Shown here in pieces: positions 2,474 to 63,101 of a DNA stretch of 64,000 bases (position 1 is the first letter of the stretch; each line of letters starts with the position of its first letter). Position numbers and translations under genes: made by a program. The notes below the pieces were generated by a model. It did no database searches. It was not told the DNA's origin and saw only the letters and a program-made list of their open reading frames with translations. The stretch is taken from the NCBI RefSeq assembly GCF_011386835.1, contig NC_088800.1:69068001-69132000 (forward strand). The letters run 5' to 3'. This DNA is from Chrysemys picta bellii. Taxonomy: Eukaryota.

Positions 2474-18709
<16,236 letters not shown>

Positions 18710-24665: not shown

Positions 24666-24985
24666 GAACTGTTGGCAAGTGGGTGTCTGCGGATCTCTAA
24701 TCTCAGGATGGAGTGATGAGCAAAGAGGTAGTCTCCAGTTCAGCTTTAAAGTGATCCTCTTCTTTGTTTAATTCCCATGACCGAACAGCAACCCAGTGTC
24801 TTACCACAGAGCAGGAGAAAGAAGCTGATGAAGCAGATATTCCCCAGAAAAGCCAAAGGGTGCAGTTGGGGTCTATTTTCACTCCTGCAGATCCTGTGTA
24901 AAGTATTCAGAGCTCAGTACCTGAAGAGCTCGCTCTTCGTGGCCCTACATGTTGTGCTTTTATTTTGCAGCCTGTATTTGAGGAT
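24666..24985 (+). pseudogene. relic ABCC exon 7/8-like segment
   Basis: ADL*SQDGVMSKEVV (cf. ABCC1 SDLWSLNKEDTSEQVV), then EQEKEADEADIPQKSQ (cf. ANEEVEALIVKSPQ), frameshift, then SLLQILCKVFRAQYLKSSLFVALHVVLLFCSLYL (cf. ABCC1 [35 protein letters not shown]; ABCC2 LMKALFKTFYMVLLKSFLL). Confidence 0.65.
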
Positions 24986-25148
24986 GTAATTCATGCAGGT
25001 CAGCAGACCACAAAATAAATTCTGTGTTAAGGAAAAGGAAGTAAAAAGGTTTTACTTTGAGACTGAGTCAAGTTCTCAAGCTTGGAGACACTGATCACAC
25101 TTCTCTTTTGTGGGGATGAGTGTCAGGTCACAAGGAGCCAATCCCCAC

Positions 25149-25310
25149 CCTGTGAGGAATTAGAGCCATATCTGTACAACTTATGAAAGCTGATTTGATA
25201 TTGTGAAATTGTATTATGAAAAAAATTGAAGTGTGTCTCTCTCTCTCTCTCGAGATGGACGCTTCAACATACATATATAAAAAATATGTCTCCACCATTG
25301 TTGATAGGAC
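25149..25310 (-). pseudogene. relic ABCC exon 13-like segment
   Basis: ctacag acceptor and in-frame gt donor, phase 0/0. VLSTMVETYFLYMYVEASISRERERHTSIFF vs V..TFSVYVLVD..ILDAQKAFTSITLF; an (AG)n expansion sits inside. Correct position after the exon 12-like piece. Confidence 0.45.
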
Positions 25311-25355
25311 CTGTAGCATGTATACCCTAGATAAATACCATCCCAAAAATTTTAC

Positions 25356-26126
25356 TTAAAAACTCAGTATCTTCTCCAGACTATATTAAGCATAGTGCAG
25401 GGATCTCAAACTCAAATCACCATGAGGACTAGTACATTGGTCTGAGGGCTGCATCACTGAAACCTTTTTCATACAATGATACAAAAATATAGTAAAAAAT
25501 GAAAAGTAATACAGTATGCTATTAAGTCAATGTATTAACTTTTTAAAAACCTGTAATGCGAAGAGGGGTTTTAATAAAATATACACACTCAGTAATGCAC
25601 CTCCCTCAAATGACAAAACACGCATTTACTTTTAGAATTACTTCAGTTAAAGCCCCCCTCCCCCCCCACCCCTGGCTCTTCTCCCACTCCACCACTTCCA
25701 TGAGGCCCCGCCCCTGCCCTGCCTTTTCCCACCCCTTCCCCAGCCCTGCCTCTTCTCCTGAGCGCGCTGCATCCCCACTCCTCCCCCCTCCCTCCTGGGA
25801 AGTCCTAAGTGCTGGGAGGGAGGCGGAGGAGCGGGGACCTAGCACGCTCAGGGGAGTGGGGACAGGGGTTATGGAGAGCTTGGCTGCTGGTGGAGTCGGC
25901 ATCTATGGTGGGCTGCAGGAAATAACTCTGCGGGCCAAATGCAGCCCGCAGGCCGCATGTTTGAGACCCCTACCGTAGCGCTTTATCAGCGGCATCTTTG
26001 TATTTTGTTATGGTTGGATCGTTCTTCATAAAAGTTATCTCCCAGGCATAGAACACAAGTCAATTAATCCCTGAAAGAATTTCATTGGTCAGGTTGATTG
26101 ATATGCCTTGGTCTCACCTGTCATTC
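25356..26126 (-). pseudogene. relic ABCC exon 12-like segment, split by a hAT insertion (25398-25972)
   Basis: tttttctgacag acceptor, then E*QVR.K.. and LTNEILSGIN*LVFYAWEITFMK (cf. ABCC1 [23 protein letters not shown]). After the transposon it resumes ...TEFL before a gtaaaa donor. Confidence 0.85.
25398..25972. mobile_element. hAT (Charlie/Buster-type) non-autonomous element inside the relic exon 12-like segment
   Basis: TIRs CAGGGATCTCAAAC / GTTTGAGACCCCTA; degenerate 8-bp TSD GCATAGTG / CCGTAGCG with central TA. Confidence 0.72.
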
Positions 26127-26191
26127 CTGTCAGAAAAACTCATATTTCAGAAATAAGTTGAATAGGTTGAATTCTAGTTGCAGATCAATAC

Positions 26192-26251
26192 TTGGACAGC
26201 TCTGCTAAGCTTAATACAGTCATTTAGCACAGGATTTAAATGGTCCTATAG
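26192..26251 (-). pseudogene. relic ABCC exon 11-like segment
   Basis: ctcag|CT ATA GGA CCA T[ttaaatc]CT GTG CTA = IGPSVL once a 7-nt insertion is removed (cf. LGPSVL). Ends NDCIKLSRAVQ|gtattg in frame (cf. NAVMAMKTKTYQ|gt); needs an internal deletion. Confidence 0.5.
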
Positions 26252-26450
26252 CTGAGATTGGAATTAATCCTAACCCACAGCCAGTAGAAACCCACAGCCA
26301 GCTGAAAGATCAACCTCTACGTTTTAAACCCCCTACCTAGCAACCCCTAAAAACTCAGTTCCCATGGAGGCAGGTTGAACACATCTGCACACAAATCAGG
26401 CCACCACCAATAGAGTCAGCATCTTGGAAAAGGTCATTGATTGTCCTCGC

Positions 26451-26604
26451 CTGCTGGAGCATCTATATTGCCACAGCTCTGATCAGAGGCTTGGACCATG
26501 AAGGCATCACAAGAATTCATCAGTTTCTGCACATCAGAGGAGATTGGATTTATAATCTCCCCAGAAGGTGAAGTCTTTCTTGCTGCTTTTATAATGACCA
26601 AGGA
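26451..26604 (-). pseudogene. relic ABCC exon 10-like segment
   Basis: SLVIIKAARKTSPSGEIINPISSDVQKLMN..., frameshift, WSKPLIRAVAI*MLQQ (cf. ABCC1 [45 protein letters not shown]). 154 nt vs 162 expected; acceptor ctgcaa and donor gcgagg are both one base off consensus. Confidence 0.82.
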
Positions 26605-26639
26605 TTGCAGGAAAATAACTTTATGAGGTAAAGTTTTTA

Positions 26640-26733
26640 AAAAACAAAACAGCAACCCTAAATGCATTCTTCATACCTCAGGCTAATGCTTTTGTGCACA
26701 GGCTACATAGCTATCCAGGGGTCATTCATTACC
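26640..26733 (-). pseudogene. relic ABCC exon 9-like segment
   Basis: ttcag acceptor, then VMNDP / WI(G)YV (cf. FVND..APDWQGYFY) and GMK..(R)VAV (cf. GMRIKTAV). Heavily deleted but in the expected place upstream of the exon 10-like piece. Confidence 0.42.
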
Positions 26734-27490
26734 CTGAAGGATGAAGACGGGTCTGCTAGCTATGTCACTGCCGATCGTTCCTCCCTGACCCCCTAAGCAC
26801 TTTGTTGGCCAGAGCAAGAGACAGTGGGCTAAGAGGGCAAAGGCCAAACTATTACCTCTTGCTGCTGAATTTCTTTCTTTGTGAACACATTTCTCTTGCT
26901 GTTTGGAGTGCACATGTCTATAGCAGAGAACAGCATATTGGATACAAAAACAGCCTTCATAACCTTATTGTTTGAGTCCCCCATGCACTTCGCTGCTGTT
27001 TACCAAAAGTTTTGTATATGTACAGTGGGTGCTCATAATGCTACCAGTCCATTTTCTTTTTGGGGTTTCTATAATGTAACCTGCTGGCACAATTCTTTTC
27101 CCTCAAAGTCATTTGTCTCCCTGAAGTGTCTGGCTGAATTTTTCTTGCATATGATAGATAAAGGCTTCAATGTGGACAGTGGGTATCAGAGTTAAATAGG
27201 AGGGAAGCTGCTCTGTTTAACTGTTCTCAATGGCCCCAATCCAGCAAAGCACTTGCACTCCTGTTTAACTTTAAACATACCGACTTCGAGCATGTGAGCA
27301 GTTCCACTGAACTTAAGCACATGCTTTGTAACCAAATCTTTGAAAACCTATTTCAGCAGCACAAAAATGTGGTGACAAATATCTGAGAAACAACTGGATA
27401 GCACAAAAGGGTGTCTGAATGCCATGTAGTTGACATGGAGGGATGCGGGATCTTCCAAAAAACACTTTAAAATGGGTGTGATGTCTACTT

Positions 27491-27553
27491 TTGCACGATC
27501 GTAGGATTTTTTTTGAAAGAATAGACATTCAGCCTAGTGCCCTCGTTAAAAAC
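27491..27553 (+). pseudogene. relic ABCC exon 14-like segment
   Basis: LHDRRIFFERIDIQPSALVKN vs ABCC1 [21 protein letters not shown]; a weak match supported mainly by its position just before the exon 15-like piece. Confidence 0.35.
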
Positions 27554-27803
27554 AAACAAAACAACTTTCCCTGCCCTGCTTTTGAGCTGATGTTCTGCCG
27601 GGCTGCCCTCCCCTCGTTCATCTCAAATCTGGTAGGATGCCACCTGGCAGTCAGTAGGCATTTTTACTTTGAGGTAAGGTGCTTTGGAATCCTGTGGAGG
27701 TAAAAGGTATTGTATATTAATGTAAAAGCCTATTGTTACTCTAAAAACCCTGTTCTCCATGCTGTGCTTTTATTTCCCCCTTTGACTGTTTTCGTTTGAG
27801 CAG

Positions 27804-28006
27804 GTGAGATTGCTATAGAAGATGGGACGTTCTCTTGGTCTTCATTGGATTCTGTCTCAGAAGGTACTTACGTGCTGTCACTTAAGGAGATCTCTCTCCC
27901 TTAGTTACAGGCAAAGAGCTGCTACTAGCAATCATGGAAGTTATGCACCTGCATATATAATGATTTTCAGCCCAGCCAATGTTCAGGCAGATGTCAGACT
28001 TCCTTG
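27804..28006 (+). pseudogene. relic ABCC exon 15+16-like segment (start of NBD1)
   Basis: gagcag acceptor in phase 1, then EIAIEDGTFSWSSLDSVSEGTYVLSLKEISL (NBD1 entry motif I.I.(N/D)GTFSW...LK.I.L), frameshift, then GKELLLAIMEV (cf. KGELVAIVGEV); ends at a gtaaga donor at 28007. Confidence 0.7.
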
Positions 28007-28026
28007 GTAAGATTAAGAATAATAAC

Positions 28027-28994
28027 TAGGGCCCTACTAAATTCATGGTCCATTTTGGTCAATTTCATGGTCACAGGATTTTTAAAATCCTACATTTCAT
28101 TATTTTGGATATTTAAATCTGAAATTTCATGGCCGTTGTAATTGTAGGGGTCCAGACCCAAAAAGGAGTTGTGGGGGGTCATAAGGAATTGTAGAGGGCG
28201 GTTGTGGTACTGCTACCCTTACTTCTGTGCTGCTGCTGGCAGGATGCTGCCTTCAGAGCTGGGCCCCCGCCAACAGCCGCTGTTCTCCAGCCAACCAGCT
28301 CTGAAGGCAGCACAGAAGTAAGGATGGCAATACCATGAACCCCCCTCAAAATAACCTTGTGACCAGGGCCATCCTTACCCTGATGCAAACTAGGCAGCTG
28401 CGTGATGCTCCAGCGGCCACCCCAATCCCCTGGCGGGCTGAGCTGGCCAGGAAGGCTGCCCCGCCCCCACTCCACCCCTTCCCCATAGCCTCTGTCCCCG
28501 CCCTGCCTCTCCCCACCCCACTGTGCCCCAGCCCGGTCCCAGCTCCATCCCCTCCCCTGAGCTACGTCCCGGGGAACTGCAGCAGGGGTCGGGCGCAACC
28601 TGCACTCACTGGGCGGTGGGAAGTGGAGCGACCTAACCCCAACCTGCTCTGCCGGCTTGTGCTGGGGGGTGGTTTCCCCCTGCCTTCCAAGCCTGCTCTT
28701 GCCCCTACAGACCTTGGGCACAGCCCTCACCCCATGGAGGCCTGGGGTCAGCCTCCCCACCCATGGAGCGGGGGCTGCATGTTGCACCAAAATGTCTAGG
28801 GACAGCCCTGCTTGGGACCCCCCCCCCGCAAGTTCCTTTTGGGTCAGAACCCCCAATTTGAGAAATGCTTGTCTCCCCCATGAAATCTGTATAGTATAGG
28901 ATAAAAGCACACAAAAGACCAGATTTCACAGAGGGAGACCAGATTTCACAGTCCGCGATGCGTTTTTCATGGCCATGAATTTGGTAGGGCTCTA
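28027..28994. mobile_element. hAT-like non-autonomous element (~970 bp)
   Basis: long TIRs TAGGGCCCTACTAAATTCATGG / CCATGAATTTGGTAGGGCTCTA, GC-rich interior; no clear TSD. Confidence 0.7.
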
Positions 28995-29169
28995 AAAAAT
29001 TATTGCAGCCTCTGTTCCAAACCACTGCTTCACTTGCACTAACACTGGAGAAGAGAAAGGGGTCTGATTCAGGAGACAAGTGAAAGAAGAATAAACTGAG
29101 TGCAGGCTGAAGAGATCTGGGCTGCTGCTAAATCAAGTCAAATTAAATCTTCCTTGAATAATATCGGTT

Positions 29170-31585: not shown

Positions 31586-63101
<31,516 letters not shown>

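Follow-up and report, generated by a model that had tools for sequence, protein, structure and literature searches.

Mutations of ABCC6 underlie pseudoxanthoma elasticum, and ABCC1 encodes a multidrug pump. Parreira et al. (2018) described a single ABCC6 in tetrapods, explained ABCC1 and ABCC6 by a tandem duplication followed by an inversion, and did not find abcc6-like pseudogenes outside primates (PMC5902450). The present analysis concerns 64,000 nucleotides of DNA from the turtle Chrysemys picta bellii (NCBI RefSeq assembly GCF_011386835.1, contig NC_088800.1, positions 69,068,001 to 69,132,000 of the forward strand), which at their full length are referred to as the window. The interval between 18.7 and 31.6 kb of the window is the 12.9-kb ABCC1–ABCC6 spacer, because the flanking exons belong to ABCC1 on the plus strand and to ABCC6 on the minus strand. 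The part of the spacer at 24,666–29,130 is most probably a unitary fossil, left by a third long-MRP gene which belonged to the ABCC6 lineage and once stood between ABCC1 and ABCC6. The relic surviving in turtles comprises exons 8–16 only, with exons 11 and 16 being tentative.

Among the closest described systems are ABCC6P1 and ABCC6P2 of human and great apes, which, like the relic, are ABCC6-derived non-coding partial copies located near ABCC6 on its own chromosome, one of them inverted (PMC5902450). The two are young primate-specific segmental duplications, whereas the relic is ancient and common to two distantly related turtles. ABCC6P1 and ABCC6P2 copy 5′ exons and are transcribed; the relic, unlike them, sits between ABCC1 and ABCC6, keeps exons 8–16, evolves neutrally and has shown no spliced RNA. 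The tail-to-tail ABCC1–ABCC6 pair shares with the relic the locus, the family and a history of local duplication combined with a change of orientation (PMC5902450). The relic and ABCC6 also meet 3′ end to 3′ end, as ABCC1 and ABCC6 do, but the latter two are intact and retained in bony vertebrates, whereas the third member is dead and was previously unknown. Another example of extra ABCC6-type paralogues kept in some lineages only is provided by teleost abcc6a and abcc6b (PMC5902450). In contrast to the relic, these are functional genes on different chromosomes that go back to the genome duplication of teleosts; the teleost ABCC6-type proteins form two groups in the tree described below, with which the relic is not specifically grouped by the approximately unbiased (AU) test. 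The relic is a duplicated-gene pseudogene and thus a known kind of object, and it is previously unreported, since no ABCC6-like pseudogenes outside primates are given in the published survey (PMC5902450).

The original prediction, made from the letters of this DNA alone, claimed that the spacer holds ABCC-like coding remnants in order, and this is borne out under a shuffle control. Full-length long MRPs were collected via one exon of the ABCC6 of the window, the set was enlarged by two further searches, and a profile built from 120 long MRPs was run on six frames. Within the spacer it returns exactly five domains, all in 24.8–27.9 kb and with the protein order kept, which span profile positions 296-340, 389-430, 495-531, 535-592 and 635-650 and represent exons 8, 10, 12a, 12b+13 and 15. 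Ranked by score, the five pieces reach 19.1, 11.2, 4.1, 0.8 and -5.1 bits in the scan of the whole window and 18.4, 10.5, 3.4, 0.0 and -5.1 bits in the scan of the interval only. The maximum over 200 local dinucleotide shuffles was 5.5 bits; 10.5 bits or more never occurred, 3.4 or more occurred once and 0.0 or more twice. The exon 15 piece (-5.1 bits) is background when taken alone, with 0.45 such matches expected per shuffle, and its version in the leatherback turtle scores better. Over all 64 kb, the profile scan finds the true exons, the relic and an N-run artefact only, and the other ~45 kb of intron DNA are without a comparable match.

The tblastn search of the interval with long MRPs, which had been proposed as a check, gives significant matches for exons 10, 12a and 12b–14 (E=1.2e-6 to 1e-3). 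With full-length proteins against the whole window, the matches lie at 26667-26515 (minus, E=1.2e-6, exon 10), 26128-26021 (minus, E=1e-3, exon 12a) and 26839-27303 (plus, E=1e-3, exons 12b–14), followed by 27809-27898 (plus) with E=2. When the whole PDB is searched with the exon 10 piece (31 aa), long MRPs are the only matches, and these fall on the homologous residues (408-436 of MRP1; best E=0.012). The relic thus carries TMD1 homology in the exon order of the long-MRP family. Its pieces are the following.

24707-24965, plus strand: exon 8-like remnant, profile ~250-335, preceded by a cag acceptor (24704-24706) and interrupted by one stop (ALK*) and, at 24878, by a frameshift.
25976-26838, minus strand: inverted block with exons 12a, 11 (tentative) and 10 reversed, recognised by the strand and order of the matches and arranged alike in leatherback.
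25979-26127, minus strand: exon 12a-like remnant, INLTNEILSGIN*LVFYAWEITFMKN, its stop common to leatherback; 11.2 bits, tblastn E ~3e-4.
26193-26302, minus strand: tentative exon 11-like remnant, read from the sequence, its alignment unstable between the two turtles.
26451-26604, minus strand: exon 10-like remnant, SLVIIKAARKTSPSGEIINPISSDVQKLMN, a frameshift, WSKPLIRAVAI*MLQQ, then a CAG|GCGAGG donor-like site; E=1.2e-6, 19.1 bits.
26839-26975, plus strand: exon 12b fused to exon 13, KGQTITSCC*ISFFVNTFLL/LFGVHMSIAENSILDTKTAFITL, profile 535-592, with a 3-codon loss at the junction.
27108-27190, plus strand: exon 14-like remnant, SFVSLKCLAEFFLH..., immediately preceded by a pyrimidine tract and AG; present in leatherback; 15.2 bits (frameshift-aware).
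27804 to ~27870, plus strand: exon 15-like remnant, the entry to NBD1, EIAIEDGTFSWS, a frameshift, then FCLRR.
27871-27945, plus strand: possible exon 16 / Walker A remnant (tentative), YLRAVT*GDLSPLVTGKELLLAIMEV, its frames read in both turtles.

All four peptides quoted in the original prediction are present, those of exon 8 and of the exon 15 entry on the plus strand and those of exons 10 and 12a on the minus strand; SLLQILCKVF...LKSSL lies at 24879-24965 (plus), INLTNEILSGIN*LVFYAWE at 26101-26021 (minus) and IAIEDGTFSW at 27809-27838 (plus). Only the quoted segment LSLKEISL is probably out of frame, the homologous continuation after the frameshift being FCLRRYL. In exon 8, the profile match covers 24846-24983, the frameshift-aware alignment of 24879-24965 reaches 28 bits, and the length of the remnant agrees with the 276 nt of ostrich ABCC6 exon 8. 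The frameshift-aware aligner recovered the true intron positions when run on real ABCC6. A candidate "exon 7" (DL*S...) was rejected, as it lies upstream of the exon 8 acceptor and ostrich exon 8 spans the same profile range as one exon. Exon 9 was not found in the relic. A minus-strand match resembling the end of exon 8 and exon 9 at 25272-25421 (..EKILSF*VKFL..YLSRVYMLQVLSTMVETYFLYM) was also rejected, with tblastn E=2.2, no support from the profile and an order that misfits a simple inversion; it straddles the boundary of a transposon described below and is probably due to chance. If real, it would make the rearrangement more complex than a single inversion.

Stops and frameshifts render the relic non-coding, as had been foreseen. 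They are multiple and, together with the internal inversion, common to leatherback, and no continuous reading frame is left. The full long-MRP domain set (TMD0, TMD2 and two nucleotide-binding domains) is not present, and the only further domain trace is the tentative Walker A. Splice sites are partly in place, also in agreement with the prediction: acceptors precede exons 8, 14 and 15 and a donor follows exon 10, all at sites homologous to those of the family. An example is the cag acceptor with a strong pyrimidine tract at 27801-27803, which occupies the site homologous to the ABCC6 intron 14 acceptor. Because the intron signals stand at homologous positions, the source was genomic DNA, not cDNA. 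The tentative exon 11 is flanked by intron-like stretches at 26303-26450 (148 nt, GC..AG) and 26128-26192 (65 nt, GT..AG). The predicted co-orientation with ABCC1 holds for the main orientation of the relic but not for exons 10–12a, which are inverted. The right end of this ~0.86-kb inverted block abuts exon 12b exactly at profile 534/535, in the middle of exon 12.

The leatherback ABCC6 locus contains an orthologous relic with the same inversion, in which exons 8 and 15 are better preserved. It scores 14.7, 10.7 and 6.7 bits, compared with a shuffle maximum of 1.2; the exon 8 orthologue reaches 15.7 bits over profile 248-343, and the exon 15 version, IEDGTFSWSLLDFPCLRR, reaches 29 bits in the frameshift-aware alignment and continues with PCLRR. 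Four stops (ALK*, AVAI*, GIN* and AVT*) and the frameshift after DVQKLMN are common to both turtles. The relic blocks are 89.1% identical between the two species and the flanks 87–93%; the relic is conserved no better than its flanks and therefore evolves neutrally. The shared stops and frameshift, together with the neutral divergence, indicate that the gene was dead before the Chrysemys–leatherback split. Profile positions 1-248 and those beyond ~690 have no match in either turtle.

In alligator, the spacer holds a pseudo-exon 30, corresponding to the NBD2 Walker B region, ~6 kb past the ABCC6 stop and on the strand opposite to ABCC6 (55996-56180 of the alligator locus sequence). It contains two stops, its acceptor and its AG|GTAAGT donor are intact, and its score of 18.9 bits compares with a maximum of -0.3 in shuffles. 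Its location in the same gap and orientation, with both splice sites intact, speaks for a gene that was once complete and had introns. The ostrich spacer, 4.2 kb long, is empty and has no third gene, and in Amia, where ABCC6 and ABCC1 are 6.7 kb apart, nothing is called between them. No intact third gene was found in living lineages, among which the Amia and ostrich gaps were examined and key groups lay beyond the reach of the search.

The relationship of the relic was addressed by a maximum likelihood tree of 193 columns with an annelid outgroup, from which ABCC2 and ABCC3 were left out. Over these columns, the relic is 42–47% identical to fish ABCC6-type proteins, 36–44% to ABCC1 (marmot 33%) and 36–43% to sauropsid ABCC6. 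It falls within the ABCC6 clade, as opposed to ABCC1 and the outgroup, with a UFBoot value of 100. This clade unites fish "MRP1-like", lungfish, coelacanth and sauropsid ABCC6, in the order of the species tree; both the synteny in Amia and the tree identify the fish "MRP1-like" proteins as ABCC6 orthologues. In the AU test, the relic is rejected as sister to turtle ABCC6 (p=0.0015), to ABCC1 (0.005) and to tetrapod ABCC1 (0.004), as well as outside both (0.04). Tree and AU tests therefore define the relic as an old ABCC6-type paralogue and not a recent copy of either neighbour. The central claim of the original prediction, a decayed extra long-MRP paralogue, is supported by the leatherback relic, by alligator pseudo-exon 30 and by this rejection of a recent neighbour copy. 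As a side observation, the lungfish gene spans 786 kb.

The most economical origin of such a gene would be an inverted fold-back duplication of ABCC6 into the ABCC1–ABCC6 spacer, which would place its 3′ end opposite the 3′ end of ABCC6 in a tail-to-tail (palindromic) pair. This duplication may have taken place after ABCC6 had arisen and no later than in the common ancestor of turtles and archosaurs. The copy would then have lost its function via stops and frameshifts, and in the turtle lineage a ~0.86-kb block with exons 10–12a would have been inverted. Beyond exon 8 on the 5′ side and exon 16 on the 3′ side, the gene would have been deleted or have decayed past recognition, and the transposons would have been inserted later.

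Several results weigh against this reading. TMD0, TMD2 and NBD2 have left no trace in either turtle. Collinear profile matches above shuffled background had been expected from ABC models, and they appear with the long-MRP subfamily profile but not with the generic Pfam ABC_membrane and ABC_tran, which found no ABC domain in nine stop-free pieces (22–79 aa) at E up to 10. The sole Pfam match is a chance ALN (E=0.09, below its cut-off) on the leatherback exon 8 piece, and the silence results from the pieces being too short and too decayed for a generic model. The orthology of alligator exon 30 to the turtle relic cannot be shown, NBD2 is too conserved to assign this exon to a paralogue, and the alligator and turtle gaps have no DNA-level homology except for 73 nt near the ABCC6 3′ end. 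The tree rests on ~190 degenerate codons, its root is one partial annelid sequence, and the branch of the relic is very long, with ~1 substitution per site. The AU test keeps the relic as sister to all, sarcopterygian, actinopterygian or sauropsid ABCC6, which allows for different times of duplication; the likelihoods of four basal placements, that beside all ABCC6 included, are at most 1 log unit apart. The relic is also oddly compact, with intron 12 absent and narrow gaps at 26128-26450 and 26976-27107; introns 10, 11 and 13 measure ~148, 65 and ≤75 nt, compared with 0.3–2.7 kb in the living ABCC6 of turtle, alligator and ostrich.

The absence beyond exons 8–16, which alone are detectable in both turtles, would be explained directly by a partial segmental duplication. 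In this case, only about these exons would have been copied, the third gene would never have been complete, and the alligator exon 30 would be a second fragment of unrelated origin. The distance from exon 16 to the ABCC6 stop, 3.7 kb including 1 kb of transposon, is indeed too small for exons 17–31 with their introns, and primate ABCC6P1 and ABCC6P2 show that partial ABCC6 copies arise (PMC5902450). This explanation is nevertheless unlikely, as alligator has, in the corresponding gap and equally oriented, an NBD2 exon whose splice sites are intact; moreover, neutral DNA of such age is expected to suffer deletions, and the divergence of the relic, which shares about 40–47% amino-acid identity with every living member, fits a long independent history. 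Unlikely, too, is the idea that the relic is the remnant of the original head-to-tail ABCC1 copy, the proto-ABCC6, and that the living inverted ABCC6 is its fold-back copy. If so, the relic would physically record the step of "tandem duplication then inversion" that has been inferred for this locus, a third long-MRP transporter would have worked from early bony vertebrates to stem reptiles, and it could persist intact in an unsampled lineage.

The compactness of the relic also brings to mind a processed or semi-processed retrocopy, or a transposon-carried fragment, which landed by chance between ABCC1 and ABCC6. Intron 12 is absent by the anchored test of the 12/13 junction (p=0.0013), and the other intron-like gaps are very short. 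Missing introns at 8/9, 9/10, 13/14 and 15/16 were considered and rejected, as the anchored junction tests gave p=0.30–0.74, at chance level, so these junctions lack exon–exon continuity. Only intron 12 is gone; before exons 14 and 15 and following exon 10, intron-like gaps still carry splice signals where the family has its introns, and neither splice site of the alligator exon 30 is lost. A random landing in a 13-kb spacer beside the parent family, which the relic adjoins, would be very unlikely, the relic pieces are single copy, and a retrocopy is accordingly highly improbable. That T-rich, hydrophobic translations resemble transmembrane helices by mere chance might be suspected from the silence of Pfam, from several apparent junction continuities at chance level and from the exon 8 and exon 15 pieces, neither of which finds an ABCC protein in PDB on its own. 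This explanation is contradicted by the shuffle and window-wide controls, the collinearity, the PDB matches of exon 10 and the independent recovery in leatherback and alligator; it deserves almost no credence as a whole and is refuted for the core pieces, exons 8, 10, 12a and 12b–13.

In public runs, the relic pieces have a low, single-copy-like depth, and the inserted transposons are multicopy. No spliced joints were seen in the runs guessed to be RNA, where only scattered low-depth unspliced contigs occur, which is weak evidence that the relic is transcriptionally silent. The relic has no detectable function, as judged from its neutral divergence and these scattered unspliced contigs, and the practical consequence of its discovery is therefore small. 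With a fossil third gene, a gene cluster studied in medicine would gain a lost member, and the history of the ABCC1–ABCC6 locus would include at least one duplication beyond those evident from the living genes. The relic corrects the published restriction of ABCC6-like pseudogenes to primates. Owing to the slow molecular clock of turtles and crocodilians, gene fossils older than 100 million years can be preserved, and these are missed by annotation based on open reading frames.

The transposons within and beside the relic are listed below.

25399-25975, strand not assigned: transposon of 577 bp, similar to a miniature inverted-repeat transposable element (MITE), with terminal inverted repeats ..GGGATCTCAAAC / GTTTGAGACCCC.., adjoining the left inversion junction.
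28021-28995, strand not assigned: transposon with terminal inverted repeats GGGCCCTACTAAATTCATGG / CCATGAATTTGGTAGGGC and a nested insertion at 28365-28817.

The MITE-like element at 25399-25975 is missing from leatherback, reaches a high, multicopy depth in the public runs and has a GC-rich core in common with 28466-28534; it is a lineage-specific insertion and no part of the old gene. The transposon at 28021-28995 has a depth of hundreds to thousands in public runs, with loose ends at 28022/28027 and 28994, and forms the 3′ limit of the recognisable relic; leatherback is without its nested insertion. A short interspersed repeat lies at 27234-27340, within the gap between exons 14 and 15, where contigs from other loci end (loose ends 27234 and 27309).

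As for the neighbouring genes, the plus strand of the window carries the last ~ten ABCC1 exons (profile positions ~890-1510), the final one ending at 18706, and these are 82% identical to marmot MRP1. ABCC6 exons 9–31 occupy the minus strand from 63193 to 31589 and are 92% identical to painted-turtle ABCC6. NOMO is found upstream of ABCC6 in leatherback, alligator and ostrich, in agreement with the published synteny (PMC5902450). A run of 130 N lies at 11526-11655, within an ABCC1 intron; replacement of N by A in the profile scan led to spurious matches at 11373-11768. The UniRef model of Chrysemys ABCC6 runs, at residues ~590-615, into the intron after exon 13 and skips exon 14. The intron-derived part is identical to the translation of the intron of the window at 57760-57712, and on this comparison of sequences the model looks like an annotation error.

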